Origin: Rebecca billardiae RCC1528
Taxonomy: Eukaryota; Protista; Haptophyta
NCBI GenBank assembly: GCA_965240325.2
Contig: OZ251229.1
Span: 372,001 to 436,000, forward strand
Direction of reading: 5' to 3'
Length of the DNA stretch: 64,000 nt
This document shows, piece after piece, positions 14,401 through 55,607 of the stretch. The translations under genes were made by a program, and so were the position numbers. Within the stretch, counting starts at the first letter, position 1, and the number at the start of each line of letters is the position of its first letter. The notes beneath the pieces were generated by a model, which made no database searches, had not been told where the DNA came from, and was given only the letters and a program-made list of their open reading frames with translations.

Positions 14401-14500
14401 GAAAATCTGAAGTGCACTGAACTACCGGAAAAACCCTTTGGCCAACCGTGAACCGCCGACCGCCGTGCGTCCGCCGACAGCGCTGGCGCGAGCACCCTCG

Positions 14501-26969: not shown

Positions 26970-28379
26970 ATGGACTCGGCGTGCGCGCGTGCGGATGTGC
27001 GGCTGACCGACCTGCCACCCGAGCTGATCGCGCGCATCCTCGTTCACCTCGATAACGTGCGCGACCTCGCCGCCGCCAACGCCGCCGCGCGCCTCTTCCG
27101 CGGCGCGCCGCTCGAGCACGCGCTGCGCGAGCGCGCGGCCGCGCGCGGGCACGAGGCCGCGCTGCCGGCGAGTCTGCCCGTTGGCGTGTGCACGTGGGCG
27201 GAGGAGCTGCTCGCGCGCGAGCGTACTCTCGAGCTCGCGCACGGGCACGCGCACGTCGTGGCCTCGGCCTCCGGTGTATTCCATATCGACGGCAGCAGCG
27301 CGTTTGTGGCCGCGGACGGCAGCGTGCTCACGTGCGGCAAACCGCTGGGCCATCCCGACCTCGACCGGGAGTCCCACGTGCTCGTGCCGACGCGCGTGGC
27401 CTCGCTGGAGGCGGTGCCCGTGCGTGCGTTGGCTGCCGGGAGCCAGCACCTGCTCGCGCTCTGCGCGGCGGGCGCTGTGTACGCGTGCGGCAGCAACGAG
27501 TTCGGACAGCTGGGCGTGGGCGACAAGGCTGGGCGACGGGCGTTCGTGCAGGTGGCGGCGCTGGGCGTGGGGCTCGTCATCTGCATCGACGCTCACGACC
27601 ACAGTCTCGCGCTGACGGCTGCGGGCGCGGCGTACAGCTGGGGCTTCAACCGCTGCGGCCAGCTCGGCCACGGCGACACGGAGCACCGGCTGGAGCCGAC
27701 GCGCATCGAGGCGCTGGACGGCGTGCGCGTGGGCGGCGTGGCCGCGGGCTGGGGGCACACGCTGCTGCTCTCGGCGTGCGGCGCCGTGTACTCGTGTGGG
27801 CAGGCTGATGCTGGCCAGCTTGGCCACGGTGACAATCAGTGGCGGCCCGTTGCGCTGCGCATCGAGGCGCTCGCGGGCGTGCGCGCCGTGCACGTGAGCG
27901 CGGGCGCTGGGTACAGCCTGGTGGTGGACGCAGCGGGTGGCGTGCACTCCTTCGGAGATTGTGCCTTTGGCGCGCTCGGCCACGGTATCGTGGCCGATAG
28001 CTTTGTGCCCACGCGCATCGCCGCACTGGCGGGCGTGCGTGCCGTGCGCGCCAGCGCGGGCGGTTACACTAGCGCAGTGGTGTGCGCGGACGGCAGCGTG
28101 CACGCGTTCGGGTTCAACGGCAGCGGCGCGCTGGGGCTGGGGAACACAGTGGTGAGCAGGCTGCCCACGCGGGTGGGGGGCCTCGCGCAGGCGCGCGTGG
28201 TCGACTGCTCATTCGGCGCAGATCGCGCCCACTACGTCACAGCGGACGGCTGCGTGCACACGTGCGGCACACATATGGCCGCGCTCGGCCTGGGCGTGGG
28301 CTACGATGGCGGAGTGCAGCAGACGCCGCAGCATGTGGTGCAGCTGCCGCCCCTGATGCGGCGCTGTGGGCCGCGCTGA
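26970..28379 (+). CDS. F-box + RCC1-repeat protein (paralogue 2), intronless
   Basis: RLTDLPPELIARILVHL plus RCC1 repeats; N-terminal DNA is nearly identical to paralogue 1. Confidence 0.9.
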   Translation: MDSACARADVRLTDLPPELIARILVHLDNVRDLAAANAAARLFRGAPLEHALRERAAARGHEAALPASLPVGVCTWAEELLARERTLELAHGHAHVVASASGVFHIDGSSAFVAADGSVLTCGKPLGHPDLDRESHVLVPTRVASLEAVPVRALAAGSQHLLALCAAGAVYACGSNEFGQLGVGDKAGRRAFVQVAALGVGLVICIDAHDHSLALTAAGAAYSWGFNRCGQLGHGDTEHRLEPTRIEALDGVRVGGVAAGWGHTLLLSACGAVYSCGQADAGQLGHGDNQWRPVALRIEALAGVRAVHVSAGAGYSLVVDAAGGVHSFGDCAFGALGHGIVADSFVPTRIAALAGVRAVRASAGGYTSAVVCADGSVHAFGFNGSGALGLGNTVVSRLPTRVGGLAQARVVDCSFGADRAHYVTADGCVHTCGTHMAALGLGVGYDGGVQQTPQHVVQLPPLMRRCGPR

Positions 28380-33763: not shown

Positions 33764-34593
33764 GCCTGAACCGACAAACTCGACTCGAGCGACACGTTCA
33801 TTCAACGTGATGAGGCCGAGCCGAGGGGGAGGCTGGGGGAAGCTTGCATTCCAAGGGGCGTCGATCGCCGCGCCGCATCCCAGAACCGCGTCGGGCGCGT
33901 CGGCCGCACCCAAGACGAGACGTTGTCCAAAGTCCTCCGCCCTGGGCTCGCATTTCGCGCTTGCACGGATGCCCTCGAGCATGGTCAGGTGCCGTGCGCG
34001 CGCCGGCTTCACGCAGGACGCGCTTCCTTTACACGCTCCGCGCCATGCGGTTTCTGGTGGGCCCGAGCTCCGCTTCGCACGATGGCCCGCTTTGTTCCAA
34101 CGGTCTCCTCCCGTGATGCCGGCCGTGGCGGCCACCACCGCAACCGGGTTGTCTGGGCGTTTGGAGACCTGCCTGTGGTGACGCGCCAGTTGGTCGCGGC
34201 CCGTCGCCTTGGTTACGTTGTCAGGCTACTCATGGGCGTTCCGCACCAGCAGGCGGAGCTGCGCAGCGGATCCACCCATCACGCTGCTCATGGACAGGGC
34301 ATGCACGTGTGACGCGGCGCCCTCTCGGCGGCGTCCCGCGTACATGACGATGTCCATCGCACGGCCCCCCAAAACGCTCACGACGCGCGGTTCGGCATGG
34401 CGACCCAAGATTTATTTATTCTCGATTCATCCTTCTTTCTTTTTCTTGGCTGTGCTTTCTTATTTTTTTCCAACACCAAGCAGCCTGTGCGGCAGCAGCC
34501 CCTCTTCCCGCCAACAGCCTCGCGCGGAGCACGCCGTCAAACCTTGTGATCGCGGACTCGGAAGACGCCAAGGAAAACGCACGCCTCGAAAAC

Positions 34594-37500
34594 ATGAACC
34601 TCCTCGTCGCCATCCTGGCCATCTCTTCCGGGTGCGCCACGCGCTGCCTTCGCTCGCTGCGCGCGCGCGCTGCGAAGACGAACGCGCGCGCGCGCGGCCA
34701 CGCCGCGCACCGGCAAGCACAACACGCGTGCGCGCCCAGCGCGCGAGATTGGCGCGGCGTGCTGCTTGCGCGTGCATGTATGACGCGCGCCATCGCACTT
34801 CCTTCGCCTGCCTTGCCCGACGCGAACGTCTCGCCCTTCCGGGCACGCGTGCTAACCTCGCGCGCATGCATGCATGCGCGCGCGCTCGTCGCCGCGCAGA
34901 CTCGGGTGCGGCACGGCGGAGCCGACGAATCCAGCCTCGCCACTCGGCATGTGCGACGGGAAGCCCTCGACCCGGCAGCAGCAACGGTGAGCCTTGCGCG
35001 ACTCTCGCGCGCCGCGCATGCGCGTTGCGCTTGCGTCTCGCTCGCGCGCCGCGCGACGGCCGTCGCGATCGCAGGGCACGCGTGCGGCCAGCGCGGCGCT
35101 TCGTCGCATCGTGCGGCGCGCGGCACGCGCGAGCGCGCGCATCGGCCCATGCCGGTCCCAGTGGCCCTGGCCCGCCTCGCGCGACGCGATCGTCTAACCT
35201 TGCCGGGCGCGTGGGCATGCCCACCACGCGCTCGCGGCCGCGCAGGCGAGCTGAAGTCCCGCCGCACTCGCCATCAGGCATGCTCAGCCCTGGGCCAAGC
35301 CAGCCTTCGCCAAGCCCGTCGCCGTCTCCACCGCCGAGCCCGCCGACTTCGCCTCCGGCAAAGCCCGCCGGCGTCTCCGCCGCCGAGCCCGCCGCCCTCG
35401 CCGCCGCCGAGCCCGCCGCCCTCGCCGCCGCCGCGCTCGCCGCCGAGTCCGGCGCCGCGCCCGCCGCCGTCGCCGCCGCCGAGCCCATCACCGAGTCCGC
35501 CACGCTCGCCTCCACCAAGCTCGCCGCCCTCGCCGCCGCCGGGCAGCCCGCCGCCGTCGCCGCCGCCGAGTTCGCCGCCGAGTCCGGCGCCGCGCCCGCC
35601 GCCGTCGCCGCCGCCGAGTCCATCACCGAGTCCGCCGTCGAGTCCGCCTTCGCCGAGCCCGCCGCCGTCTCCGCCGCCGAGCCCGCCGCCCTCGCCGTCG
35701 CCGAGTCCATCACCGAGTCCGCCGCCGAATCCGCCTTCGGCGAGCCCGCCGCCGAGTCCGGCGCCGCGCCCGCCGCCGTCGCCGCCGGTACGCCCGCCGC
35801 CGTCTCCACCGCCCAGCCCGCCGCCCTCGCCGCCGCCGCGCTCGCCGCCGAGTCCGGCGCCGCGCCCGCCGCCGTCGCCGCCGCCGAGTTCGCCGCCGAG
35901 TCCGCCTTTGCCGAGCCCGCCGCCCTCGCCGCCGCCAAGCCCGCCGCCGAGTCCGGCGCCGCGCCCGCCGCCGTCGCCGCCGCCGAGTCCATCACCGAGT
36001 CCGCCGCCGAATCCGCCTTCGCCGAGTCCGCCTTCGCCGAGTCCGGCGCCGCGCCCGCCGCCGTCGCCGCCGCCGAGCCCATCACCGAGTCCGCCACCCT
36101 CGCCTCCACCAAGCTCGCCGCCCTCGCCGCCGCCAAGCCCGCCGCCCTCGCCGCCGCCGAGCCCATCACCGAGTCCGCCACCCTCGCCTCCACCAAGCTC
36201 GCCGCCCTCGCCGCCGCCAAGCCCGCCGCCCTCGCCGCCGCCGAGTTCGCCGCCGAGGCCGCCTTCGCCGAGCCCGTCGCCCTCGCCGCCGCCGAGTTCG
36301 CCGCCGAGTCCGCCTTCGCCGAGCCCGTCGCCCTCGCCGCCGCCGCGCTCGCTGCCGATTCCGCCGCCGAGTCCGCCTTCGCCGAGCCCGCCGCCGTCTC
36401 CGCCGCCGAGCCCGCCACCCTCGCCGCCGCCAAGCCCGCCGCCCTCGCCGCCGCCAAGCCCGCCGCCCTCGCCGCCGCCAAGCCCGCCGCCGTCGCCGCC
36501 GCCAAGCCCGCAGCCCTCGCCGCCGCCGCGCTCGCCGCCGTCGCCGCCGCCGAGCCCGCCGCCGCCGCCTCCACCAAGCTCGCCGCCCTCGCCGCCGCCA
36601 AGCCCGCCGCCCTCTCCGCCGCCGAGTTCGCCGCCGAGTCCGCCTTCGCCGAGCCCGCCGCCCTCGCCGCCGCCAAGCCCGCCGCCGAGTCCGGCGCCGC
36701 GCCCGCCGCCGTCGCCGCCGCCGAGTCCATCACCGAGTCCGCCGCCGAATCCGCCTTCGCCGAGCCCGCCGCCGAGTCCGGCGCCGCGCCCGCCGCCGTC
36801 GCCGCCGCCGAGCCCATCACCGAGTCCGCCACCCTCGCCTCCACCAAGCTCGCCGCCCTCGCCGCCGCCAAGCCCGCCGCCCTCGCCGCCGCCGAGTTCG
36901 CCGCCGAGTCCGCCTTTGCCGAGCGCGCCGGCCTCGCCGCCGCCAAGCTCGCCGCCCTCGCCGCCGCCGAGCCCGCCGCCCTCGCCGCCGCCGAGTCCAT
37001 CACCGAGCCCGCCGCCGAATCCGCCTTCGGCGAGTCCGCCTTCGCCGAGTCCGGCGCCGCGCCCGCCGCCGTCGCCGCCGCCGAGCCCATCACCGAGTCC
37101 GCCACCCTCGCCTCCACCAAGCTCGCCGCCCTCGCCGCCGCCAAGCCCGCCGCCGTCGCCGCCGCCGAGTTCGCCGCCGAGTCCGCCTTTGCCGAGCCCG
37201 CCCGCCTCGCCGCCGCCAAGCCCGCCGCCGAGTCCGGCGCCGCGCCCGCCGCCGTCGCCGTCGCCGAGTCCATCACCGAGTCCGCCGCCGTGCCCGCCTT
37301 CGCCGAGTCCGCCTTCGCCGAGTCCGGCGCCGCGCCCGCCGCCGTCGCCGCCGCCGAGTCCATCACCGAGTCCGCCGCCGAATCCGCCTTCGGCGAGCCC
37401 GCCGCCGAGTCCGGCGCCGCGCCCGCCGCCGTCGCCGCCGCCGAGCCCATCACCGAGTCCGCCACCCTCGCCTCCACCAAGCTCGCCGCCCTCGCCGCCG

Positions 37501-40500
37501 CCAAGCCCGCCGCCGTCGCCGCCGCCGAGTTCGCCGCCGAGTCCGCCTTTGCCGAGCGCGCCGGCCTCGCCGCCGCCAAGCCCGCCGCCGAGTCCGGCGC
37601 CGCGCCCGCCGCCGTCGCCGCCGCCGAGTCCATCACCGAGTCCGCCGCCGTGCCCGCCTTCGCCGAGTCCGCCTTCGCCGAGTCCGGCGCCGCGCCCGCC
37701 GCCGTCGCCGCCGCCGAGTCCATCACCGAGTCCGCCGCCGAATCCGCCTTCGCCGAGTCCGCCTTCGCCGAGTCCGGCGCCGCGCCCGCCGCCGTCGCCG
37801 CCGCCGAGCCCATCACCGAGTCCGCCACCCTCGCCTCCACCAAGCTCGCCGCCCTCGCCGCCGCCAAGCCCGCCGCCGTCGCCGCCGCCGAGTTCGCCGC
37901 CGAGTCCGCCTTTGCCGAGCGCGCCGGCCTCGCCGCCGCCAAGCCCGCCGCCGAGTCCGGCGCCGCGCCCGCCGCCGTCGCCGCCGCCGAGTCCATCACC
38001 GAGTCCGCCGCCGAATCCGCCTTCGGCGAGCCCGCCGCCGAGTCCGGCGCCGCGCCCGCCGCCGTCGCCGCCGCCGAGCCCATCACCGAGTCCGCCACCC
38101 TCGCCTCCACCAAGCTCGCCGCCCTCGCCGCCGCCAAGCCCGCCGCCCTCGCCGCCGCCGCGCTCGCTGCGCTCGCCGCCGCCAAGCCCGCCGCCGTCTC
38201 CACCGCCGAGCACGCCGCCCTCGCGGCCGCCGCGCTCGCCGCCGAGTCCGGCGCCGCGCCCGCCGCCGTCGCCGCCGCCGAGTCCATCACCGAGCCCGCC
38301 ACCCTCGCCTCCACCAAGCTCGCCGCCCTCGCCGCCGCCAAGCTCGCCGCCCTCGCCGCCGCCGAGCCCGCCGCCCTCGCCGCCGCCGAGTCCATCACCC
38401 AGCCCGCCGCCGAGTCCGCGTTCGCCGCGCCCGCCGCCCTCGCCGCCGCCAAGCCCGCCGCCCTCGCCGCCGCCGAGCCCGCCGGCCTCGCCGCCGCTGC
38501 GCCCGTCGCCCTCGCCGCCGCCGCGCTCGCTGCCGAGTCCGGCGCCGAGCCCATCGCCGAGTCCGCCACCCTCGCCTCCACCAAGCTCGCCGCCCTCGCC
38601 GCCGCCAAGCCCGCCGCCGAGTCCGGCGCCGCGCCCGCCGCCGTCGCCGCCGCCGAGTCCATCACCGAGTCCGTCGCCGAGTCCGCCTTCGCCGAGCCCG
38701 CCGCCCTCGCCGCCGCCGAGCCCGTCGCCCTCGCCGCCGCCGCGCTCGCTGCCGAGTCCGGCGCCGAGCCCATCACCGAGCCCGCCGCCGAGTACGCGTT
38801 CGCCGCGCCCGCCGCCCTCGCCGCCGCCAAGCCCGCCGCCCTCGCCGCCGCCGAGCCCGCCGGCCTCGCCGCCGCCGCGCTCGCCGCCGAGTCCGGCGCC
38901 ACGCCCGCCGCCGTCGCCGCCGCCGAGCCCATCACCGAGTCCGCCACCCTCGCCTCCACCAAGCTCGCCGCCCTCGCCGCCGCCAAGCTCGCCGCCCTCG
39001 CCGCCGCCGAGCCCGCCGCCCTCGCCGCCGCCGAGTCCATCACCGAGCCCGCCGCCGAATCCGCCTTCGGCGAGTCCGCCTTCGCCGAGTCCGGCGCCGC
39101 GCCCGCCGCCGTCGCCGCCGCCGAGCCCATCACCGAGTCCGCCACCCTCGCCTCCACCAAGCTCGCCGCCCTCGCCGCCGCCAAGCCCGCCGCCCTCTCC
39201 GCCGCCGAGTTCGCCGCCGAGGCCGCCTTTGCCGAGCCCGCCGGCCTCGCCGCCGCCAAGCCCGCCGCCGAGTCCGGCGCCGCGCCCGCCGCCGTCGCCG
39301 TCGCCGAGTCCATCACCGAGTCCGCCGCCGAATCCGCCTTCGCCGAGTCCGCCTTCGCCGAGTCCGGCGCCGCGCCCGCCGCCGTCGCCGCCGCCGAGCC
39401 CATCACCAAGTCCGCCACCCTCGCCTCCACCAAGCTCGCCGCCCTCGCCGCCGCCAAGCCCGCCGCCCTCTCCGCCGCCGAGTTCGCCGCCGAGTCCGCC
39501 TTTGCCGAGCCCGCCGGCCTCGCCGCCGCCAAGCCCGCCGCCGAGTCCGGCGCCGCGCCCGCCGCCGTCGCCGCCGCCGAGCCCATCACCGAGTCCGCCA
39601 CCCTCGCCTCCACCAAGCTCGCCGCCCTCGCCGCCGCCAAGCCCGCCGCCCTCGCCGCCGCCGAGTTCGCCGCCGAGTCCGCCTTCGCCGAGCCCGTCGC
39701 CCTCGCCGCCGCCGCGCTCGCCGCCGAGTCCGGCGCCGCGCCCGCCGCCGAGTCCGGCGCCGCGCTCGCTGCCGATTCCGCCGCCGAGTCTGCCTTCGCC
39801 GAGCCCGCCGCCGTCTCCGCCGCCGAGCCCGCCACCCTCGCCGCCGCCAAGCCCGCCGCCCTCGCCGCCGCCAAGCCCGCCGCCCTCGCCGCCGCCAAGC
39901 CCGCCGCCGTCGCCGCCGCCAAGCCCGCCGCCGTCGCCGCCGCCAAGCCCGCCGCCGTCTCCGCCGCCGCGCTCGCCGCCGAGTCCGCCACCGCGCTCGC
40001 TGCCGAGTCCGCCACCGAGTCCGCCGCCGAGTCCGCCTTCGCCGAGCCCGCCGCCCTCGCCGCCGCCAAGCCCGCCGCCCTCGCCGCCGCTGAGCCCGCC
40101 GCCGTCTCCGGCGACGCGCTCGCCGCCGAGTCTGGCGCCGCGCTCGCTGCCGAGTCCGCCGCCGAGTCCGCCGCCGAGTCCGCCTTCGCCGAGCCCGCCG
40201 CCCTCGCCGCCGCCGAGCCCGCCGCCCTCGCCGCCGCTGAGCCCGCCGCCCTCGCCGCCGCCAAGCCCGCCGCCGTCGCCGCCGCCAAGCCCGCCGCCCT
40301 CGCCGCCGCCGAGCCCGCCGGCCTCGCCGCCGCCGCGCTCGCCGCCGAGTCCGGCGCCGCGCCCGCCGCCGTCGCCGCCGCCGCGCTCGCCGCCGAGTCC
40401 GCCTTTGCCGAGCGCGCCGCCCTCGCCGCCGCCAAGCCCGCCGCCGAGTCCGGCGCCGCGCCCGCCGCCGTCGCCGCCGCCGAGCCCATCACCGAGTCCG

Positions 40501-43500
40501 TCGCCGAGTCCGCCGCCGCCGAGCCCGCCGCCGTCGCCGCCGCCGAGCCCGCCGCCCTCGCCGCCGCCGCGCCCGCCGCCGAGTCCGCCGCCGCGCCCAC
40601 CGCCGTCGCCGCCGCCGAGTCCTTCACCGAGCCCGCCGCCCTCGCCGCCGCCGAGCCCGCCGCCCTCGCCGCCGCCGAGCCCGCCGCCGTTTCCACCGCC
40701 GAGCCCTCCGCCCTCGCCGCCGCCGCGCCCGCCGCCGAGTCCGGCGCCGCGCCCGCCGCCAAGCCCGCCGCCGTCGTCGCCGCTCACTTCACCGTCGAGC
40801 CACCAACCCTCGCCGCCGCAGAGCCCACCGCCGACCCCGCCACCGTTACCACCACCGCCGCAGGTGCCACCTGCACCGCGGCCAAGTCCACCGCCGACCT
40901 CGCATCCGAGCCCGCCACCTGCACCGCGGCCGAGTCCACCGCCGACCTCGCATCCGAGCCCGCCACCTGCACCGCGGCCAAGTCCACCGCCGACCTCGCA
41001 TCCGTGCCCGCCACCTGCACCGCGGCCAAGTCCACCCGCCGCTCCGCCGCCGAGCTCGTCGCCAAGCCCGCCACCGAGCCTGCGTCCGCCAAGCCGGCCG
41101 CCGCCGCCGCCGCCATCGCCGCCGCCGAGCTCGCCTCCGCCAAGCCCACCGCCGTCGTCGCCGCCACGTCCACCGCCGAGCGCGCCGCCGAGCTCACCTC
41201 CGTCGCGAACGCCAGCTTGGCCGCCGAGCCCGCCGCCGTCGCCGCGGCCAAGTCCACCGCCGTCGCCGCCACCTTCGCCGCGGTCATGTCGCCTGCCGCC
41301 GGCGCCGCGCGGAGCGCCTGTCTGGGCGCGAGCCCGCACGCGTGTGCGCCTCGCCTGTACAGCGAGCGTCCGGCGGCGCCCTTGCGCCGCAAGCGTCAGA
41401 GCCGCAAGGAGGCACGTCGCCGGCTCGGGCGGGAGGCGAGTGGACGCGAGCGAGCCGCTAAGCGCGCGGGGCGTCTCCTGCCGTGCGCGCTGGGCGTACT
41501 GGCGCTCGCGGTGCTCGCGCTCGGCTGCGCCTGGCGGTACGCCCCGTGTGCGCTGCTGGCGCTGGTCGCGGCGATCGCGGTCGGCTGCGCGGCGATCGCG
41601 GCCGTCGCCGATTGCGCGTGGGCGCACGGCGCGCGCGTGCCCGAGCCGCGCGGCGAGCCTCCGGCCGAGCCCCTGCGCCGCGAGCGCCGGGTCCGCAGGG
41701 CGCGGGCCACGCGCGGTGCGCCACGCCCGCGCAGCGAGCGCCGCACGCGGACGAGCGCCAAGAGGAGGTCACGTCGCAGTCGGCAGCTCGAGCGTGCCCG
41801 CGCCCGGCTCGCGCGCGCGGCGAATCCGTTCGCGCTGGCCGTGTTCTCCGAGAGCGCGGCGCGTGTGTTCGAGGAGCAGGCCGACGGGGCCAAGCGCACG
41901 GCGGAGCGGGCCGAGCGCGCGGCGAACCCGCTCGCGCGCGCCGTGTATGCCGACAGCGCGGCGCGTCTGTTCGAGGAGCAGGCCGAGGGGGCCAAGCGCT
42001 TGGCGATGCGGGCCGAGCGCGCGGCGAATTGGCACGTGCGAGCCGTGTATGCCGAGAGTGCGGCGCGTCCGTCCGGGGAGCACGCCGAGGGGGCCAAGTG
42101 CGGTGGCTGTCTGCCCGGGCGCGCTGCCGAGCGCGAGGCGAGCTTCGTGGCGCGCGTGCTGCACGTGCTGCGCGCGCTGTGCGGGCTGGCACTCGCGCCG
42201 CTGGCGCTCAGCTGCGCCTGCTCGTGCGCCGCGAGCGCGCGCGGTGCGCTCGCGGCGCTGGCCGAGGTGGTCGCGGCCGGCGGCGCGGTGATCGCGGCCG
42301 GCGGCGCGGTGTTCGCGGCCGGCGGCGCGGTGTTCGCGGCCGGCGGCGCGGTGATCGCGGCCGGCGGCGCGGTGTTCGTGGCCGGCTCCATGGTGTTCGC
42401 GGCCGGCCACGAGTGGGAGGCGGGCGCGATCGAGGGTCAGCTCAGCGAGCCTCCGGACGCGCCCCCGCGCCGCAAGCGCCGGCGCCGCCAGGCGCGGGCC
42501 GCACGCGGGGCGGCACGTCTGCGCAGCGGGCGCCGCACGCGGACGAGCGCCAAGAGGAGGTCACGTCGCAGTCGGCAGCTCGAGTTTGCCCGCGCCCGGC
42601 TCGCGCGCGCGGCGAATCCGTTCGCGCTGGCCGTGTTCTCCGAGAGCGCGGCGCGTGTGTTCGGGGAGCACGCCGAGGGGGCCAAGTGCGGTGGCTGTCT
42701 GCCCGGGCGCGCTGCCGAGCGCGAGGCGAGCTTCGTGGCTCGCGTGCTGCACGTGCTGCGCGCGCTGTGCGGGCTGGCACTCGCGCCGCTGGCGCTCAGC
42801 TGCGCCTGCTCGTGCGCCGCGAGCGCGCGCGGTGCGCTCGCGGCGCTGGCCGAGGTGGTCGCGGCCGGCGGCGCGGTGATCGCGGCCGGCGGCGCGGTGT
42901 TCGCGGCCGGCGGCGCGGTGTTCGCGGCCGGCGGCGCGGTGATCGCGGCCGGCGGCGCGGTGTTCGTGGCCGGCTCCGTGGTGTTCGCGGCCGGCCACGA
43001 GTGGGAGGCGGGCGCGATCGAGGGCACGGAGTCGTGTCGCCGTCGCCAGGCCGAGCGGGCCGAGCGCGCGGCGAGTCGGCTCAAGCTCGCCGAGCGCGCT
43101 GCGAGTCTCGCGCGCGCGGCGCGTCTGCTCGAGCGAGCCGAGCGCGCGGCGAGTCACGCGGCGCACGTGCGGCGCGCGCTGCGCGAGTGGGCACCCGCGC
43201 TGTGCGCGGCGGGCGCGCTCGGCGGCGCCTACCTGCTCGCCCCGTGGGCGTGCCCGACGCTGGTCGCGCTGGTCGCGCGGATCGCGGCCGCCCGCGCGCA
43301 GGCGCGCCCGAGCCTCCGGCGCGGCGGCCGTCGCAGCCGCGCGCGCGCGGCCGAGCCCGCCCTCCGCGCGCAGCGCGTCACGCTGCGCGGCGGCGGCGGC
43401 GCGGACGAGAACTGCCTCGCGCTGGAGCCGGCGGCACCCGTCGGCGCGCCGGCCCGCCGCGCGTGCCTCCGCGCCGCGCTCGCCACCGCCGTGCGCCTCC

Positions 43501-46500
43501 TCGCGCTCCGCGCCGGCTCGCGCGCCGACGCGGACGCGCTGCGCGCGCGGTGGGCGATCGCCGAGCGCGCGCTGAAGGGCAGGACGCACCGGCTCGGCGT
43601 GCTGCAGGCCGTCGCCGACGCGCTCTGCGTCGACATCGTGGTCTTGAGCGCGGGCTACGGCGCGCACGCGTTCCGCTGCCGCACGGGCGACGCGCCGCCC
43701 GGCTCGTGCATCTGGCTGCTGCACGAGGGGGGCGGCGGCGCGGGCGTCGGGCACGTGCGCGCGCTGGTCCACGCTGAGGACCGAGCCGCGCGTCTCGCCC
43801 TCGGGCTGTGCGAGGAGGGCGAGCCGCTCGTCGTCGCGCGCGGCGACGCGCCGGACGGCGCCATTGAGACGCGCCGCGTCGGCGCGCCCAAAAAGCGTCG
43901 CCCCCCGGCGACGCCGCCGTCGGGCGACGTCCCGACGGGACGACCCAAGGACAAACGCCGACGGGCCGCGGCCGTTGACGCGGCGACGCCCGAGGCCGCT
44001 GGCGACGGCGAGGCGGCCGACGTGGGGATGGACGAGGCCGCTGGCGACGGCGAGGCGGCCGACGTGGGGATGGACGAGGCCGCTGGCGACGGCGAGGCGG
44101 CCGACGTGGGGATGGACGAGGCCGCTGGCGACGGCGAGGCGGCCGACGTGGGGATGGACGAGGCCTCGGGCGACGGCGAGGCGGCCGACGGCTCTCTGCC
44201 CGACCCGGACGACGACGAGAACGACGAGGATTTGGCGCGCGCGCTCTTGGAGGACGAGGACCGCGTCGAAGCCGACGACGACGGAGGGGCCATGGGCGAC
44301 GGCAGCGCGCGCGCGGCCGCGGAGGGCGGCCGAGCCACGGCGAACGGGTCGCCGCCGCTCGAGCCGCCGCCGCCCGCGCGGGTGTCGCAGCGCAGGCGGA
44401 CGCGCATCCGCGACGTGGTGCAGAGCACGGTCGACGGCGTGATGGCGTACGCGCGCGGCCTCGCTGGGCAAGGCCATGACCACGCCACGCGGTGCGAGGA
44501 GTTCGAGACGGAGGTCGGTGATCCCGGCCCCGCTCTGGAGACGTGGGTGATGGCGGCGATGGACTCGTACACGTCCCGTCAGGCGCCGACGCGGGACACG
44601 ACGCGCGGCCGCGCGCGCAGCTGGTTCGAGCGCCGGCTGGAGCAGAGCGGCCGCGTGAGCACGGCGTACGAGGGCGCGTTCGACGTCCTGGGCGTGCTCG
44701 AGGTGTCGTCGTACGCCGTGAACGGCGAGTGCGCAGCGTTGGACAAGCGCGGCTTCAAGATGGTCGCCTCGTGGATGGCGAACATCTGCTTCCGTGCCGC
44801 GTGCATCGAGCTGGGCTTGCCTTACACGGCCACCGACCTGCTCGGCAAGGCGCACGCGCCGCGGGCCGTGCAGCCCACGTCGCCCGGCGTGCGCGAGGAG
44901 GCGCGGGCGACGCTCAGGCACGCGCTGCGCTCAGGCGCGCCGATCGTGAAGCTGGCCACGCGCACGTTCGTGTCAGCAGCCGACGCGGCGCACGTGGCGC
45001 ACGATGTCGCGCGCGAGCTCCGCGGGACGTGCACGATGCTGCAAAGCCCGACAAGCATGGCGGGCGGCGTGCACGTGCTCGAGTGGGTGGACGGAGACGG
45101 CGAGCAGATCGTTACGGTCCTGTACCAGGCGCTGCACCCCGAGAACAAGCTCACGCGGCTCGGCGCGCCTCGCGCCGAGGCGGGCGGCGCGCGCCCTCCC
45201 CCCAATCGCGCCGAGCTGATGGACGCGGTGCTGCTCCTCGCCATGCGCGCGGCCGCGGGCGAGGGCGCGTCGTTTGGCGCCTTCCACCCGGCCGTCGCCG
45301 CCCACGCGGAGCGGCAGCGCGTGGCCGGCGGCGGTGCGATGGTGCGCGACGGGCAGCACCCCGTCGTGCGCATGTGCAGGGAGGGCATGCGGCGCGAGCG
45401 CGAGGTCGGAGGCGGCGCGCGCGTCGCCGACGTCGAGCCGCGCGTGCAGGCTGAGCTGCGCGCGGAGTACGAGCGCCTCCGCGAGGAGCTCGGGGCGGCT
45501 GCGCCCAAGGACGTGGACGCGATGGCTGCGAGGGAGGGCGGGCCGTACAGGTGCTGCCTCGTGCTGCTCGGCCGGCGCTCGGCGGCCATCAAGGCCACTG
45601 CGGTGGAGGCGCTCGTCAAAGAGGTGCCGGCGCTCGGCTCCCACACGGCCGTGCTCGCGATGCTCGCCGTGTTCTACTATTCCAAGCCGGTGCAGGCGGT
45701 GCTCGAGCCGCTGCGCCAGGCGGCGAAGGCCAGCGACCACGCGAACGTGAAGGCGCGACTCGGAGAGCTCGCGCGACTCACGCCCGAGGGCGGGCTCGCG
45801 GCGATCGACGAGAAGCACGGCGAGGCCGCGCGCGATGTGCTGTCCAAGAAGGTGCGCGACGCGCTGCGGTGGCCCGCGCTGTGGTGCAGCGCGCCGTGCA
45901 GGGCCATCGTCGCCCGGCTGCTCGGCGCGGGCGACTCGTCGGACGCGACCCACGTGCGCGAGCTGCTCGAGCAGCTCGCGCGCCTCACGCCCGAGGGCGT
46001 GTTCGCCGCGCTCGACGCGAAGCACCGCGAGGCGGCGGGCGCGTGGCTGCCCGAGAAGGTGCGCGACGCGCTGCGGTCGCCCCCGCTGTGGTGCAGCGCG
46101 CCGTGCAGGGCCATCGTCGCCCGGCTGCTCGGCGCGGGCGACTCGTCGGACGCGACCCACGTGCGCGAGCTGCTCGAGCAGCTCGCGCGCCTCACGCCCG
46201 AGGGCATGTTCGCCGCGCTCGACACGAAGCACCGCGAGGCCGCGCGCGATGTGCTGTCCAAGAAGGTGCGCGACGCGCTGCGGTGGCCCCCGCTGTGGTG
46301 CAGCGCGCCGTGCAGGGCCATCGTCGCCCGGCTGCTCGGCGCGGGCGACTCGTCGGACGCGACCCACGTGCGCGAGCTGCTCGAGCAGCTCGCGCGCCTC
46401 ACGCCCGAGGGCATGTTCGCCGCGCTCGACGCGAAGCACCGCGAGGCCGCGCGCGATGTGCTGTCCAAGAAGGTGCGCGACGCGCTGCGGTGGCCCCAGC

Positions 46501-48927
46501 TGTGGTGCAGCGAGCAGTGCAGGGCCATCGTCGCCCGGCTGCTCGGCGCGGGCGACTCGTCGGACGCGACCCACGTGCGCGAGCTGCTCGAGCAGCTCGC
46601 GCGCCTCACGCCCGAGGGCATGTTCGCCGCGCTCGACACGAAGCACCGCGAGGCCGCTGCCGCGTGGCTGCCCGTGAAGGTGCGCGACGCGCTGCGGTGG
46701 CCCGCGCTGTGGTGCAGCGCGCCGTGCAGGGCCATCGTCGCCCGGCTGCTCGGCGCGGGCGACTCGTCGGACGCGACCCACGTGCGCGAGCTGCTCGAGC
46801 AGCTCGCGCGCCTCACGCCCGAGGGCGTGTTCGCCGCGCTCGACGCGAAGCACCGCGAGGCCGCGCGCGATGTGCTGTCCAAGAAGGTGCGCGACGCGCT
46901 GCGGTGGCCCGCGCTGTGGTGCAGCGAGCAGTGCAGGGCCATCGTCGCCCGGCTGCTCGGCGCGGGCGACTCGTCGGACGCGACCCACGTGCGCGAGCTG
47001 CTCGAGCAGCTCGCGCGCCTCACGCCCGAGGGCATGTTCGCCGCGCTCGACACGAAGCACCGCGAGGCCGCTGCCGCGTGGCTGCCCGTGAAGGTGCGCG
47101 ACGCGCTGCGGTCGCCCCCGCTGTGGTGCAGCGCGCCGTGCAGGGCCATCGTCGCCCGGCTGCTCGGCGCGGGCGACTCGTCGGACGCGACCCACGTGCG
47201 CGAGCTGCTCGAGCAGCTCGCGCGCCTCACGCCCGAGGGCATGTTCGCCGCGCTCGACGCGAAGCACCGCGAGGCCGCGCGCGATGTGCTGTCCAAGAAG
47301 GTGCGCGACGCGCTGCGGTGGCCCGCGCTGTGGTGCAGCGAGCAGTGCAGGGCCATCGTCGCCCGGCTGCTCGGCGCGGGCGACTCGTCGGACGCGACCC
47401 ACGTGCGCGAGCTGCTCGAGCAGCTCGCGCGCCTCACGCCCGAGGGCATGTTCGCCGCGCTCGACACGAAGCACCGCGAGGCCGCTGCCGCGTGGCTGCC
47501 CGTGAAGGTGCGCGACGCGCTGCGGTGGCCCCAGCTGTGGTGCAGCGAGCCGTGCAAGGCGATCGTCGCCCAGCTGCTCGGCGCGGGCGACTCGTCGGAC
47601 GCGACCCACGTGCGCGAGCTGCTCGAGCAGCTCGCGCGCCTCACGCCCGAGGGCGTGTTCGCCGCGCTCGACGCGAAGCACCGCGAGGCGGCGGGCGCGT
47701 GGCTGCCCGAGAAGGTGCGCGACGCGCTGCGGACGCCCCCGCTGTGGTGCAGCGCGCCGTGCAAGGCCATCGTCGCCCGGCTGCTCGGCGCGGGCGACTC
47801 GTCGGACGCGACCCACGTGCGCGAGCTGCTCGAGCAGCTCGCGCGCCTCACGCCCGAGGGCGTGCTCGCCGCGATCGTCGCGAAGCACGGCGAGGCCGCT
47901 GCCGCGTGGCTGCCCGTGAAGGTGCGCGACGCGCTGCGGTGGCCCCAGCTGTGGTGCAGCGAGCCGTGCAAGGCGATCGTCGCCCAGCTGCTCGGCGCGG
48001 GCGACTCGTCGGACGCGACCCACGTGCGCGAGCTGCTCGAGCAGCTCGCGCGCCTCACGCCCGAGGGCGTGCTCGCCGCGATCGTCGCGAAGCACGGCGA
48101 GGCCGCTGACTCGGTGCTGCCCAAGCAGGTGCGCCCCGCGCTGCTGAAGGGCAGCACGTGGAACACCAAGCAGAGGAAGGACATCGTGGCCGAGCTGCTC
48201 GGCGCGGATTGCGCGGCGGGCTCGGACGCGCGCGCGCTGCTGGTGCAGCTGTTGGCGCTGTCACCCTGCGCGGTGTTCAGTGTCCTGGCCCTCAAGTACG
48301 AGAAGGAGGTTACCGAGCTGCTGACCGTCAGGGTGCGGGCAGGGCTCCGCGCCACGAACGTATGGGTTCACGCGTCCTGCAAGGACCTTGTCTCCGAGCT
48401 GCTGCTCACCAGGGCGCCCGAGAAGGTGGCGCAGCTGGCTGCGTTGGTCAGCCCGACCGGCGCAGGCTCGGCACAGGGCGCGGACGTACGCATTCATCGC
48501 GTGCGTGCTCAGGAAGATCTGCTCGGGCTCGTTGGGCAGCGCAACGGCGACAATCGGTTCGCGTGCCCGGTCCCGGCGTGCAAGCAGGCATTCAAGGAGT
48601 TTAGCAAGTTGGAGGTGCGCGACGCGCGCGCGAGCCGCGCACGGGCGCTCGCGCAACCACTGCATCTCTTGGTCTGACTCGCCGCGTCTTCGCCCCCCCC
48701 CCCCCCCCCTCCACCCCACCCCCGCACTGGACCGCCACGCGCGATGCACTCGTCGGCGTTGTGCGCAGAGGCACCTGTTTAGCCATGTGGATGGGAAGCC
48801 AGGCCAATGCTGCGCGTGCGGCACCTTTTTTTCCCAAGTAGAGCATGCACTGGTGCGCGCACTGCACACGTGCGCGCCCGTGCTCGGCGGCCTGCGTCGC
48901 TACTGGCCTGTCATCTGCCGTCGCTGA
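34594..48927 (+). CDS. Giant modular protein (~4,550 aa as modelled): signal peptide, SPPP/Ala-rich tract, TM-like segments, LRGG-OTU-like, NLS, UDG-like, 69-aa repeats, C2H2 finger. Predicted exons 34594-34631, 34900-34986, 35246-48614, 48769-48927
   Basis: Spliced N-terminus MNLLVAILAISSGLGCGTA; the 13-kb frame is open; the last intron completes CPVPAC-x3-F-x5-L-E|R-HLFSH. The frame read across the SPPP tract is uncertain. Confidence 0.65.
35300..41280 (+). repeat. ~6-kb (Ser-Pro3)n-type coding repeat with higher-order duplications
   Basis: ccg ccg agc / ccc tcg units; reads as SPPP in one frame and AAAEP/AAAKP in another. Confidence 0.95.
41650..43025 (+). repeat. Internal in-frame duplications (588-bp offset, 42078 vs 42666) with 21-bp AAGGAV[IF] repeats
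   Basis: Near-identical blocks at DNA and protein level. Confidence 0.9.
43992..44190 (+). repeat. 42-bp (14-aa EAAGDGEAADVGMD) acidic tandem repeat, ~4.7 copies
   Basis: Direct repetition. Confidence 0.95.
45768..48405 (+). repeat. 207-bp (69-aa) coding tandem array: 11 full units plus 2 degenerate
   Basis: LARLTPEG starts at 45768, 45975 ... 48045, with an exact 207-bp period. Confidence 0.97.
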
Positions 48928-49479
48928 CACGCGAAGAGGGCGGCGCGGTTGGCCGCGCGCGTGCCGTGCGTGGCACATGCGCAGAAACACGCCAAGAAGT
49001 GCCAGAAGGCGACGTGCACGGCTACGACTACGACTACGACTACGACTGCATGATCATCGGGTTGATATTGTAATAATGGCGTGAGGCGAGCTGCCTGAGT
49101 CCAGCTGCCGGACACGCTCACGCAGGCACCCCCTGCGCAAGCTCTAGCTGCCGCGGAGCTGCCGCAGCCACCGCCTGGCTCATGGCTGCTCGGGCAGCCA
49201 CCGGCTCCGCACGCGGACAGTCGGCTACTACCGAGTATACAGCATATCACTGATTCTGTCATTGGTGGGCCACGACTGGCTGGCCCTGGCCATATCAGAT
49301 ATTATCCGCGGACGCCTATGTACATGCCTGACGGTCGGTTTCTCACTGCTACTTCCGGTCTCAGGGGGTCCTAAGCAGAGGTGGCCTAGGGCCGCTAGAG
49401 CGATATCCGCCGCCAACATTGACCCCCCGACACACGCGCACGCTCGACGGCACTGCCCGAGTGGCTCCGGAGACACTCG

Positions 49480-50964: not shown

Positions 50965-53900
50965 ATGAACAAGCGCGAGCTTCCGGAGGCGGAGGGGGCG
51001 GAGCCGCAGGCGAAGAAGCCCAAGGCGCAGAGCACCGCGGCCGCGACGTCACGGGCCGCTGGCTCTGCCAGCGCGGCAGGCGGCGGTGCGCCTGTCCGCG
51101 CTGCGGCTGACGGCGCGACGGCTGCCGCGCAGGCTGGCGCGAGCAGCGCCGTGCCCAAGGAAGCCGTGGCCGACGTGGTGGTGGAGAGCACTGCCGTGCG
51201 CTCCCCTACGGCATCCGCCAGGCCTCCCTCCGGGGCGAAGTCTCCCGCCGCCCTGGCGGTTCGCGACGGGTGCGCGCATGCGCGCCGCGCGCGTGCGGTG
51301 CACGCGCACAGCCGCTGCGCGCGCGTGGCATGCGGCTCGGCGCTGACGCGCGCGGGCGAGCGTCGCGCGCCACGCCATTGCCGACCGCCCTCGCCGCGCA
51401 GCAAGCTCACCAAGGACGAGCTCAAGGCGCTCAAGCTGCGGCACACGGCGATTTTCAAGGGCGCGGAGAAGATGAAGCGTGGCCTGAAGGAGTTGCTCAA
51501 CTCGCTGCTGGCGACGGAGCAGGCGGTGGTGGCGAAGACGCTGCAGCAGGCGGCGCGCGAGCGCACCAAGCAGGAGGCCGCCGCGCGCGCCACCGAGCGC
51601 AAGGCCGAGCGCGAGCGCGCGCGCGAGGCGGCGCGCGCGTGGGCAGAGCTCCAAAAGAAATATCCGATTCCGGATGAGCTGCTGGGCGCCGAGCCGCCGC
51701 TCGAGACGGCGCTGCCGGCGCGGCCGGCGCCGCGCGCGCGGATCGCGCTCGCGCCCGAGGCGCAGCACCTCGCGCCCGAGCTCCTCGCCGTCTGGGACTT
51801 CCTCTCCTCCTTCAAGCTCGCGCTCGGCGTCGAGCCGGTGCCGGCGGAGACGCTGCGCGCCGCGCTCGAGCACAGGGGTGCGCAGCCGCTGCCGCTGCTC
51901 GCGGAGGTGCACCTGCCGCTGCTCGCGCTGGTGATCGAGGAGGCGGCGGGGGTGCAGCGCGCCGCGGCGGCCGCGCGCGCGGGCGGCGCGCCGCCGCCCC
52001 GCAACGCGCTGCTGCCGCGCTCGAGCGCGCTGGCGCCCGAGGTGCGCGGCGCCGAGGGCGCGCACCAGCTGCCTGCGCACGCTGCGCTCGCGGCGGCGGC
52101 GGCCGGCGGCGGCGGTGGCGGGGCCGCGGGCGGGGCGGCGGGCGGGGCGGGCCCTCCGCCGCCGCTGCTCGTCGGCTGCGCCTCGTCGCTCGCTCTCACC
52201 GGCACGAGCTGGCCCGAGGTGCTGCGCGCGCTGCTGCGAGGCATCCTGCGCCCGCCGCCCGCCGCGGGCACGCTGTTGGGCGACGCGATTACCCAGCTGG
52301 GTACGCTCGAATACTCGATGCTGCCGTTCGAGCACAAGCTGGCGCTGCTGCGCGTGCTGGTGGACGCGGCGGTGGCGACGGAGCCGATGAGCTCGCTGAT
52401 GGCCGCGCACGCCGAGCGCCGCGCCGAGGTGCTCGCCGAGAACCGCCGCGAGCTCTCGACCCACGCCAAGCTGGCGGAGCTGTCGGACGGCGCGCTGGCC
52501 GACACGGCCGGCGGCGCCGCCGCGAGCAAGGCGCAGCAGCTGCGCCGCGCGCTGCCGTCGGACTCGAAGGTGGTGGTCGTCGGCCGTGGGCGCGGCCGCG
52601 GCCGCGGCCGCGGCGCAGGCCGCGGCGCAGGCCGCGGCAGAGGCCGCGGCCGCGCGGCCGCGCTCGCGGCCGACGACGACGGCGCCAGCTCTGTGGCCGG
52701 CACGGACGGCGGCGCGAGTGCCGTCGATCCGATGGACGTGGCGGGCGGCGGCGGCGGCGGCGCTGACACGGAGGGCGAGGGCGCGGCCGAGATCGCCGGC
52801 GCGCCCGCCGGCGCCGACGCCAAGCCCGCCGGCCCCGTGATCAAGCTCCTCCCCGCGCCGCCGCTTCCGGCGGTGTCGGACGACGAGGACGAGACGGATG
52901 GCGGTGGGTGCACGGACGCGGACGGCGCCGACGGTGAGGGCAGCGGCGGCGGCGACGACGACGACGCGCTCGCGCTCGGGCTGTCGCGCACGGAGCGCCT
53001 GCGGCTGAAGGACGAGCGCGAGGCGCGGCGCCGCGCCATCGCCAGCGTGCGAGAGCACAAGGAGCGCCGCCGCGCCGCCGCGGCCGAGGCGGCCGCCGAG
53101 CGCGCGGCCGCGTGCGACGCCCTTGAGAGGGCGATCGCTCTGAACGAGTCCGAGGCGCTGGAGGCGGCGCTGGAGAAGGCGCGCGGCGTGGGGCTGGAGT
53201 GGCGCGACGCGGAGGGCGCGCTGTGCCGCACCGAGCTGCTCCACGCCGCCGAGGTCGCGCACGCGCCCCTCCGCCGCCTCGACGAGCTCGACAATCTCGC
53301 GCGCGAGATGGAAGGCCGCTTGGCCGAGCTGCCGATGCGCTCGACGGTGCTCGGCGCGGACGCCGAGCACCGCCGCTACTGGCTCTTCGCGGCGGACCAG
53401 GGGAAGCTGTTCGTGGAGGAGGCGGACGGCGCGCCGCGGCCCGCGCAGCCCACCGCCGCGACCGCCGCCGCCGCGACCGCCGCCGCCGCCGCCGCGCGCG
53501 TGGGCATGAGCGCGCGCATCGCCGCGCGGCTGCAGCAGCAGGCGGTGGAGGAACAGGCCGCGGCCGCGGCCGCCGACGCGCCGCCGACGCGCTGGGCGTA
53601 CTACGAGTCGGTGGCGGAGGTGCGCGCGCTGATCGGCTCGCTCGACTCACGCGGCGTGCGCGAGCGCGCGCTGCGCCACGCGCTGCGCCGCATGCTCGGC
53701 GTCTTCAAGGCGACGATGCCCGCCGAGTCCGGGTTTCCGGACCCCGTGTCGGACGCCGAGCTCGCGGCCGACGGCTGGCAGGCGCACGGGCCGCACGTGG
53801 GCGAGCGCGCGCGCCGCGTCTTCGAGGAGTCCGTGTCGATCGGCACGGTGACGCGGTACCTGCCGCCCACCGCGGCCGAGCCCGCGCTGTGGCACATCTC

Positions 53901-55607
53901 CCACTTCGACGGCGACGAGGAGGACGTCGAGAAGGGCGAGCTCGAGGCGGCGCTCCGCGCGTACGCCGAGGCGGCGGCCGAGCCGGCCGCCGCGCCGCCG
54001 AGCAAGGCGCTGTGCGGTTACGTGAATCGGCTCGCGCGCGGGCGGCTCAACCCCAAGTCGCACCTGGGCGTGGCGGGCGTGCGCGCCGAGCTCGCCGCGG
54101 CCGAGTCCGCGCTGCGCGCCGGCCTGCGCAAGCGCGGCGCCGAGCGGGGCGAGCTGGACGAGGGCGCGCGCCGCTGCTGGCTGGACGCGCTCGGCGCGGC
54201 CGCCGGCGCATGCGATTTCGGCCCGCTCCTGCTCACGCTGGAGGAGATGGCGCGCGGCGCGCAGGCGATCGACGACCTGAGCGAGGAGGACGAGGCGGAG
54301 GGCGGCGAGCCCGGCGGCGCGGCGCCACCCGACGACGACCACCGCCGCTGGAAGCACGCGGGCCACGAGTTCCTCGGCAAGCGCGTGCGCCGCTTCTTCC
54401 ACGCCGACGCCGCGGCCGACGGCGGCGCGGGCGCGGACAGTGGCGCGGGCGCGGACTGCGGCGCGCAGGAGCCGTCGGACGGGCTGATCGACGGGTTCAC
54501 GCCGGCGACGCCGGGGCTGGAGGACGAGGAGCCCGCGCTGTGGCACGTGACGCACGACGACGGCGACGAGGAGGAGGTGGAGGAGTGGGAGGCGGTCGAG
54601 GGGATGGCGGCGTTCGAAGCGGCCGTGAGAGAGCCTCGCGCAGACGCAGACGTGGCGGAGTCGCGCCGGATCGCGGAGGAGCGGGCGGCGAGGGCGCGCG
54701 AGGACGCGCTGGAGGCGGCGCGGCTGCGCACGCTGCCGAGGCTGTGGCCGTCGCGGGGCGCGCGCGAGCGGTAAGCCCGCCCGCATCCCCCGCGCGCGCG
54801 TCCCGCCCCCAGCCTCGTCCCTCCTCGCGTCGTGCGCGAGCGCGCGATGGCGCACACGTCACACGCGCGCGCGCGCCGCACCGTTGACGGAGCACGCCCG
54901 CTCGGCCGGCCGCGGGCTGCGCGCTCCTCCGGCGCACGGCTGACGCGCCGGCCCCGGCGCGCGCGTGCCGCGCCGCGCGCAGCTGGCGCGCCGCCGCGTC
55001 GAGCGCGCGCACCCTCGCGCAGGTCTCCGTGTGCACGATGGCGCTGGTGGACCACTGCGCCGCGTTTGGCCTCTGCGCGCACTCGCCGGACCTGTGCAAG
55101 CTGGCGTGGGTCGCGTCGTTCACCCGTGAGCGCACTGCGCGCGCGCAAGACCCGCCGCGCGCGTGCCCGTCATGCGCGGCCGTGTGTGCGCCGCTCGCGG
55201 CTGCGCCCCCCGCTCGAGTGCGTGCGCACCGTGCGCACACGGCTCTCATGTCGCGCGCGAGGCGCCACACGCTCCGTCGCCCGCGCCACGCAGCCGCCGC
55301 GGCTGGCTCGTCGGCGGCGCCCAGTGAGCCGACCAAGCCGACCAAGCGAGGCGCGCGCACGGCCGCCGAGCTGGCGGCCCGGCTCGCGTGCTGGCAGTGC
55401 TTGCCACCGTCGGAGGTGGATGCTCCCGAGCCCGGGGGAAGGCGCGGGCCCAAGGTGAGCCGCGAGGCCGCCCTGGCCGCACTGGCCAACGCCGAGGCGG
55501 AGCAGATGAGCCGGCTGGCCGAGCTGTGCGTGCCGGCGCCCTTCATGTTCATGCTCAGCAGCGCGCCCGGAGCCAACGGCGGCGCGGCGGCTGTGGCTCG
55601 ACGCTGA
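50965..55607 (+). CDS. DDT-WHIM1/2/3 domain protein with two Tudor-like domains (BAZ1/ACF1/RLT-like ISWI partner); introns 51270-51401, 54771-54982 and probably 55126-55293
   Basis: DDT LLAVWDFLSSF..LLAEVHLPLL; WHIM1 YSMLPFEHKLALLRVLVD; WHIM2 LGADAEHRRYWLF; WHIM3 WAYY..LDSRGVRERAL; two copies of VG.R.RR.F..LWH..H.DGDEE. Confidence 0.85.

Follow-up and report, generated by a model that had tools for sequence, protein, structure and literature searches.

A homogenized tandem array of 69-residue, predicted helical modules at the end of a giant open reading frame of the haptophyte Rebecca billardiae

The 207-bp array, its reading frame and its surroundings

The DNA analyzed here, a stretch of 64,000 nucleotides from Rebecca billardiae RCC1528 (GenBank assembly GCA_965240325.2, contig OZ251229.1, positions 372,001 to 436,000; hereafter the window), carries on its forward strand a giant open reading frame (ORF) that ends in a tandem array of near-identical 69-residue units. 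The window is nuclear DNA of a very GC-rich eukaryote, with a G+C content of 56-86% in 2-kb windows, and its context is given by a neighboring DDT/WSD/WHIM gene. The array is a genuine protein-coding tandem repeat of approximately 13 modules, which make up the C-terminal ~900 residues of the giant protein.

Tandem Repeats Finder reported the 207-bp array at positions 45766-48144, with 11.5 copies, 93% matches and 0% indels. When translated in the frame starting at 45768, the DNA yields eleven 69-residue units (45768-48044, + strand) without indels, and a 50-nt piece of the scaffold is present in 11 exact copies as compared to 0 expected from dinucleotide-preserving shuffles. An initial annotation, made from the sequence alone, had described eleven 207-bp units sharing a near-invariant scaffold, and these results bear it out; the order of variable blocks that it had listed unit by unit was reproduced exactly by the translation. 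Pairwise distances among the 11 units range from 1 to 25 nt, unit 1 being the most diverged, and at the protein level all 11 differ from one another.

The same annotation had proposed that degenerate units cap the array, which is true of its downstream end. Unit 12 (48045-48248, + strand; 68 residues, one codon shorter) scored 64.5 bits with a hidden Markov model (HMM) built from the 11 units, and it shares 73% nucleotide identity and 54% amino-acid identity with unit 11. Unit 13, the C-terminal cap (approximately 48249-48458, + strand), scored 25 bits (E 8e-10) with the same model. The two cap units preserve a hydrophobic pattern (L1, F10, L13, L25, V29-R30, L33-R34, W39, C44, V48 and L51-L52), most other residues being changed. 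Upstream of unit 1, the HMM gave only a weak half-unit match (unit positions 39-64, E 0.1) from approximately 45675; this possible N-terminal half unit (YYSKPVQAVLEPLRQAAKASDHANVK..., 45675-45767, + strand) runs into unit 1. No further copy of the 69-residue unit was found when the six frames of the window were searched with the unit profile. A 34-35-residue half-repeat within the unit was considered and rejected, as the best split of the unit is at the level of shuffles (P=0.41) despite a 102-bp period reported by Tandem Repeats Finder at 56-61%.

The array ends a stop-free ORF that spans 34209-48677, with the first in-frame ATG codons at 35217 and 35280 and the stop codon at 48675-48677. At 76% G+C, each of the six reading frames across the array is fully or almost fully open, and thus openness by itself is no proof of coding. 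The G+C content of third codon positions (GC3) in the array frame is 0.89-1.00 from approximately 35400 to 48300, and values of 0.94-1.00 hold in one phase across both the array and its unique flanks; G+C at the second position is ~0.5 across the array and flanks, rising to ~0.7 further upstream. All tandem-repeat periods inside the ORF (9/12/15/24, 21, 588, 42 and 207 bp) are multiples of three. Across the degenerate units 12 and 13, + frame 0 alone is free of stops, and unit 13 matches the core units with 28.5 bits in this frame, whereas the other five frames give at most 11 bits and most of them contain stops. These three lines of evidence (the GC3 phase, the periods divisible by three and the single frame surviving in the caps) lead us to conclude that the array is a real protein-coding repeat. 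The gene is probably one giant single exon (35217-48677, + strand) with its start at 35217 or 35280. The genome of Diacronema lutheri has a GC content of 73.25%, and 45% of its genes are single-exon genes (PMC8379373).

The N-terminal part of the giant ORF is a low-complexity, Ala-rich region of ~2000 residues. At 35400-40800, repeats of 9/12/15/24 bp extend over ~5.5 kb and share the frame of the array; GC3 here is 0.96-1.00 and the GC skew reaches down to -0.33. Reasoning from the codons, the antisense frame that shares the wobble position would be Ala-rich as well, so that composition alone leaves the strand of this region open. Two transmembrane-like hydrophobic segments, stronger than those of the duplication described next, are encoded at 41466-41618. 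They are followed by a 588-bp internal duplication (copies at 42187-42489 and 42775-43077), each copy of which holds a 21-bp repeat encoding Gly/Ala/Val/Phe-rich transmembrane-like segments (AAGGAVIAAGGAVFAAGG..., approximately 42327-42404 and 42915-42995). The stretch at 43383-43970 (LRGGGGADENCLALEP...), considered as an OTU-like candidate, matched no Pfam family at E<=10.

Closer to the array, positions 43881-44232 (+ strand) encode basic clusters resembling nuclear localization signals (NLS), KKRR and KDKRRR, and then an acidic 14-residue repeat (42 bp, 4.5 copies), which Tandem Repeats Finder placed at 44000-44190 with 98% matches. The basic clusters might serve as an NLS and the acidic repeat as an activation domain. 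A non-repetitive region of ~430 residues (44382-45674, + strand) precedes the array; searches of Pfam (E<=1), of PDB sequences and for homologues all came back empty for it, and its single-sequence AlphaFold model (pLDDT 40.6) is unusable. The C-terminal tail (48459-48677, + strand) carries the motif F-x-C-x4-C-x3-F-x5-L from 48558 onward and had no Pfam match; it ends at the stop codon, directly 3' of which lies a poly-C tract (48694-48728). At 48558-48620 the tail reads F-A-C-P-V-P-A-C-K-Q-A-F-K-E-F-S-K-L, which corresponds to the opening half of a classical C2H2 zinc finger; the expected histidines are absent, an Arg taking the place of the first. We rejected the possibility that a downstream exon finishes this half finger, as no frame of the 48.6-49.5 kb region offers a convincing continuation.

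The next gene downstream on the + strand (50965-54771) encodes a DDT/WHIM1/WSD protein with a PTM/DIR17-like Tudor domain, an ordinary chromatin-remodeling accessory factor. Far upstream, a gene for an RCC1-repeat protein (RCC1-like domain, E 3e-79) lies at 14438-15928. A pair of repeats spaced by 156 bp within this gene (15371-15700) recurs ~12.3 kb downstream (27813-28142) with 61-80% identity, which suggests a second RCC1-like copy beyond a retroelement. This retroelement is of the copia type and sits at 18793-22356 in an island of lower GC (58-62%); its two adjacent ORFs contain an integrase SH3-like domain (PF25597, E 1e-13) and an RVT_2 reverse transcriptase (E 4e-34). One public sequencing run shares words with the region 43200-49100 (6% of words). 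Thousands of its short contigs pile up on the poly-C tract (~48683-48728) and two contigs of 151 nt cover 48783-49078, while none lies on the array. The pile-up on poly-C explains the 6% word share, and the run is uninformative with regard to the organism.

Variation and exchange among the units

The claim that variation is concentrated in small blocks was borne out. Among units 2-11, only 26 of the 207 nucleotide columns are variable, and all of them fall within columns 25-149. Codons 51-69 together with codons 1-8 of the following unit (LLGAGDSSDATHVRELLEQ followed by LARLTPEG) are invariant in these units, silent sites included. This amounts to a circular run of 83 nt, which has a probability of P=2e-5 under uniform placement of the variable columns and of P=1.6e-4 when calculated by codons. 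The approximately 13 variable positions are arranged in four blocks: codons 9/15, where residue 9 is V, M or G and residue 15 is A, T or E; codons 20-27, with RDV, AAW or GAW at residues 22-24 and SK, PV or PE at residues 26-27 (both within block 1 of the initial annotation); codons 35-37, with W, S or T at residue 35 and A, P or Q at residue 37; and codons 42-50, with AP, EQ or EP at residues 42-43 (its block 3), R or K at residue 45 and R or Q at residue 50. Many of these substitutions are radical (R/A/G, D/A, V/W, K/V/E, W/S/T, A/E and P/Q), and this, together with the predicted secondary structure, suggests that the variable positions are probably exposed to solvent.

The pairwise differences sort the units into three types: type R (units 1, 3, 4, 6 and 8), type A (units 5, 7, 9 and 11) and type G (units 2 and 10). 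Most pairs of the same type differ by 1-6 nt, as compared to 11-25 nt between types. In block 1 the R and A types differ at 11 nucleotides inside a stretch of 17 nt. A compensated frameshift, which might have converted one of the cassettes RDVLSKK and AAWLPVK into the other, was considered and rejected: as judged by eye, a pair of indels does not improve the alignment, and the alternative frames give a different peptide.

Units two positions apart resemble each other more closely than immediate neighbors do, as the mean number of differences is 7.4 nt at lag 2 and 13.5 nt at lag 1. Units 4, 6 and 8 differ from one another by 1-3 nt, and units 5 and 7 by 2 nt. The low lag-2 distances indicate that the center of the array is a higher-order repeat of two units (414 bp) that has been duplicated as a block. 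At the same time, the four-gamete test was failed by 126 of the 276 informative site pairs, a pattern that takes four or more recombination or conversion events to explain (minimum number of events by the Hudson-Kaplan method, Rm, at least 4). Thus, of the proposal that the blocks recombine independently, the exchange itself is real, although much of the unit order simply reflects the duplicated 414-bp dimer and the three unit types.

Differences between the units had also been described as mostly non-synonymous. As a count this is correct (21 of the 24 distinct variant codons), and the Nei-Gojobori ratio of non-synonymous to synonymous differences (pN/pS) among the 11 units is 2.1. However, the description does not hold as an excess over what the base composition predicts. 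The third codon positions of the array comprise 392 G, 357 C, 9 T and 1 A (98.7% G/C). With codons restricted to those ending in G or C, the nominal ~55 synonymous sites per unit shrink to ~18 that are free to vary, and pN/pS drops from 2.1 to ~0.7. Likewise, of all the single-nucleotide substitutions that are possible in the consensus unit, the synonymous fraction is 27% without any restriction and 11.3% under this one. The observed synonymous share is 3 of 24 variant codons (12.5%), and the predominance of non-synonymous differences is therefore the neutral prediction for this genome; the counts are compatible both with neutrality and with diversifying selection. The three silent variants (columns 60, 63 and 138) lie in the variable half of the unit, beside the blocks. 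The degenerate units likewise give a pN greater than pS, to which the same caveat regarding G/C third positions applies.

Relatives, predicted fold and likeness to modular binders

Searches for relatives of the array at the sequence level were essentially blank. A word-indexed protein search with the 1038-residue array returned nothing, and an exhaustive phmmer search against 1.84 billion cluster representatives returned one match (E 3e-4), to an unrelated repeat protein. The library contains no match of the array to itself, and thus the gene is apparently outside the 15 billion predicted proteins behind that library. No relative was found in prokaryotic genomes, nor in metagenome contigs when these were searched with a peptide pattern and with an exact 50-mer, and a feature search of the ESM Atlas was also blank. 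A single match to a viral contig (an ORF of 803 residues in an AT-rich contig) was taken as spurious, as no such repeat is present there. The unit profile found nothing below E 0.1 among all PDB sequences, and no transcription activator-like effector (TALE) was among its matches.

In Pfam, the only family touched by a single rotated unit was AbiEi_3 (PF11459), a bacterial antitoxin and transcriptional regulator. Its E value for the whole array is 2.5e-40; this is the sum of ~11 weak matches. A single rotated unit scores 14-19 bits (best E 1e-3), its residues WCS...FAAL being aligned with profile positions 59-102, and membership was rejected because this is under the curated cut-off of 26 bits. 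The other weak Pfam matches, mostly to bacterial helical families, appear to be due to composition.

For structure prediction with AlphaFold2, units 8-13 were used as input together with a shallow alignment of other, register-shifted stretches of the array. The resulting model is all-helical and of middling confidence (pLDDT 68.2, pTM 0.48). It has five helices per unit (residues 6-24, 27-32, 36-40, 42-53 and 60-71), and R-L-T joins successive units. Nine of the 13 variable residues map to the last turn of helix 1 and the loop after it, to helix 3 and the loop leading into it, or to the first turn of helix 4. At a pTM of 0.48, the units may be either stacked as a solenoid or arranged as beads on a string. 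The start of helix 4 bears the motif L-W-C-S-x-x-C-(R/K)-x-I, with the variable AP/EQ/EP pair between its two cysteines; it resembles the W-C-G-P-C-K active site of thioredoxin. His17, Cys40, Cys44 and His62 are the same in all 11 core units, and the caps lose most of them.

Fold searches with the array model gave no significant match in Foldseek (PDB), VIA-align (wide search and second look), BFVD or the ESM Atlas, the last two returning nothing at all. The best Foldseek match in the PDB (E 0.02) was to 8ugc, a designed flat repeat protein. VIA-align, whose wide search is independent of Foldseek, gave Z scores of 4.2-6.7 for 3uzr, 9y59, 9dd2, the DAXX 4HB domain and the Rx coiled-coil domain, values within its stated noise range for helical proteins. 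Each of these matches spans one unit (model residues 212-280, for example), and they include an APH helical subdomain, designed switches and coiled-coil domains of plant NLR proteins. Designed helical repeat proteins and four- to five-helix bundles are thus similar to the unit as compact helical modules, but they have no sequence relation to it and their scores are at noise level. Two further folds, the XRE/lambda-repressor-like helix-turn-helix and the HNF-6 cut domain, were set aside, as they reached only Z 3.3-3.8; the former aligned with the degenerate last unit of the model and the latter with its first unit. The annexin-type repeat, which has 70 residues and five helices, was absent from the fold-search matches and was set aside as well. 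The sequence of the repeat family is new, and, to the extent that a model of middling confidence allows a judgment, no known fold can be assigned to it. The kind of object is nonetheless familiar, namely a domain of helical tandem repeats that evolve in concert and vary at surface positions, and the array displays what is general to alpha-helical tandem repeats: tandem units in one frame, predicted helices and diverged terminal caps.

The initial annotation had compared the array to TALEs. As far as organization goes, the likeness is good: TALEs also consist of tandem units that are near-identical down to their synonymous sites, with few variable codons, degenerate end units, and NLS-like and acidic segments, and the array shares with them the confinement of variation to a few recombining blocks. 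The unit start, L-T-P-E and then hydrophobic residues, may also be similar to that of a TALE repeat. The likeness does not extend to membership in the family as judged by unit length, sequence or fold. A TALE unit has 33-35 residues and two helices, whereas the array unit has 69 residues and five predicted helices; and TALEs vary at one hypervariable di-residue per repeat, whereas the array varies at ~13 positions in four blocks. There was no match to the TAL_effector family of Pfam (E<=10 for units, E<=1 for the array), and no TALE chain was matched among PDB sequences with either phmmer or the profile. The TALE superhelix of two-helix hairpins was not matched by the model of middling confidence either: TALE chains gave Foldseek E values of 0.7-2.4 with TM scores of 0.17-0.23, and VIA-align gave a Z score of 2.4 over 57 residues. 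Finally, TALEs come from Xanthomonas and Ralstonia, while the array belongs to a eukaryotic alga and is known here as a sequence. The PPR, PUF and OPR/HPR-RAP proteins are helical tandem repeats like the array, but their units have 35-38 residues. No Pfam match to PPR, PUF or OPR/HPR was obtained with the array or with single or rotated units, and neither a RAP domain nor another catalytic domain was detected.

Possible roles of the array

The view that we lean toward is that of a binding platform, made of helical repeats and specific to this lineage, which forms the C-terminal part of a giant protein probably encoded by one exon. Under this view, unequal crossing-over and gene conversion would keep the central 11 modules near-identical in DNA, and the array would have grown at least in part by duplication of the two-unit (414-bp) block, the three unit types having recombined at least four times. 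Homogenization is complete over codons 51-69 and 1-8, and the differences that survive are confined to codons 9-50, most of them at the ends of predicted helices and in loops. The array might then form an elongated platform whose modules differ slightly in the surface patch that they expose. A nuclear ligand, either a chromatin protein or a nucleic acid, would be the most likely one because NLS-like and acidic segments are encoded upstream in the same ORF.

Several observations weigh against this view: no homologue was found, so that conservation cannot vouch for function; the synonymous to non-synonymous ratio is at its neutral expectation and does not call for selection for diversity; the net charge per unit is approximately 0; there is no evidence of expression, the only public run found leaving the array uncovered; and the structural model is middling, so that the exposure of the variable residues is argued from the type of substitution and the predicted secondary structure.

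The most serious competitor, which we nevertheless regard as rather unlikely, is that the array reflects neutral repeat dynamics: a young, fast-evolving expansion within a giant, largely low-complexity ORF, in which the blocks are what gene conversion has so far spared of two or three ancestral kinds of unit, and the protein is perhaps dispensable or barely expressed. The invariant half of the unit could then be a hot region for conversion or crossing-over, and this would fit the synonymous and non-synonymous counts equally well. The agreement of the synonymous share with its neutral expectation (12.5% against 11.3%), the confinement of silent variants to the variable half, beside the blocks, the higher-order dimer, the absence of any homologue found and the repetitive nature of the rest of the ORF all speak for such dynamics. 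However, the diverged caps have kept both the frame and the hydrophobic pattern of the helices, which argues for selection on a folded protein; all repeat periods of the ORF are divisible by three; and 11 differences within 17 nt of block 1, next to an 83-nt run with none, would be difficult to produce by drift alone. An artefact, by which we mean either a wrong copy number or order in the assembly or a non-coding minisatellite whose frame merely happens to lack stops, is the least credible explanation of all. Stops are rare at 76% G+C, so that open frames come easily, and copy number and order are without confirmation from raw reads. Against this, the unit length is divisible by three without any indels, the GC3 periodicity stays in phase through the unique flanks and a single frame survives in the caps, and the 11 units are all distinct, unlike what a collapsed or duplicated assembly would give.

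The remaining alternatives assign a more specific role to the modules. A coded binder, in which each module would use its three or four variable blocks to read one element of DNA or RNA, so that the target is spelled by module order, is what the initial annotation had in mind with its TALE/PPR/PUF-like specificity code, and we consider it improbable. Such a binder would be in line with a scaffold that is uniform down to its silent sites, with variation held in blocks that recombine, with the degenerate caps, with the NLS-like and acidic segments upstream, and with radical substitutions at predicted helix ends and loops. However, with the GC3 of 98.7% factored in, the non-synonymous excess disappears; block 1 comes in just three alleles, and a duplicated dimer accounts for most of the unit order; neither sequence nor fold links the array to nucleic-acid-binding repeats (TALE Z 2.4, no TALE, PPR or PUF family in Pfam); the units are near-neutral in charge; and no paralogues or orthologues are known in which block alleles could be seen to covary with targets. 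The specificity code thus stands unsupported by this analysis, though not refuted by it. A bolder version of the same idea, and in our opinion a still more doubtful one, is that the 69-residue, five-helix module would be a new recognition unit, able to read a nucleic-acid or chromatin target element by element through three surface blocks at codons 22-27, 35-37 and 42-43. As the targeting arm of a giant precursor with transmembrane-like, NLS-like and acidic parts, the array would then be a TALE counterpart specific to a eukaryotic alga and built on an unrelated fold. It is very unlikely that the modules instead bind metal or have a redox function, with Cys40, Cys44, His17 and His62 forming a Cys2His2-type site or a redox-active C-x3-C where a helix begins, and the AP/EQ/EP pair tuning it; the array would in that case be a row of metal-binding helical domains. 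The invariance of these four residues throughout the 11 units and the location of block 3 exactly between the cysteines are in line with this idea. Yet the whole scaffold is homogenized, so that invariance carries little weight, the two caps remain recognizable modules after losing most of these residues, and there was no match to any metal-binding family.

Irrespective of the ligand, if any, of the platform that we favor, the array is a clean case of concerted evolution, with a sharp border between the fully homogenized and the variable half of the unit. It also shows that in genomes with ~99% G/C at third positions, mostly non-synonymous counts or a Nei-Gojobori ratio above 1 are to be expected under neutrality. 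If it is true that the modules bind their targets one by one, an algal lineage that has received little study would have supplied a new helical scaffold for programmable recognition.

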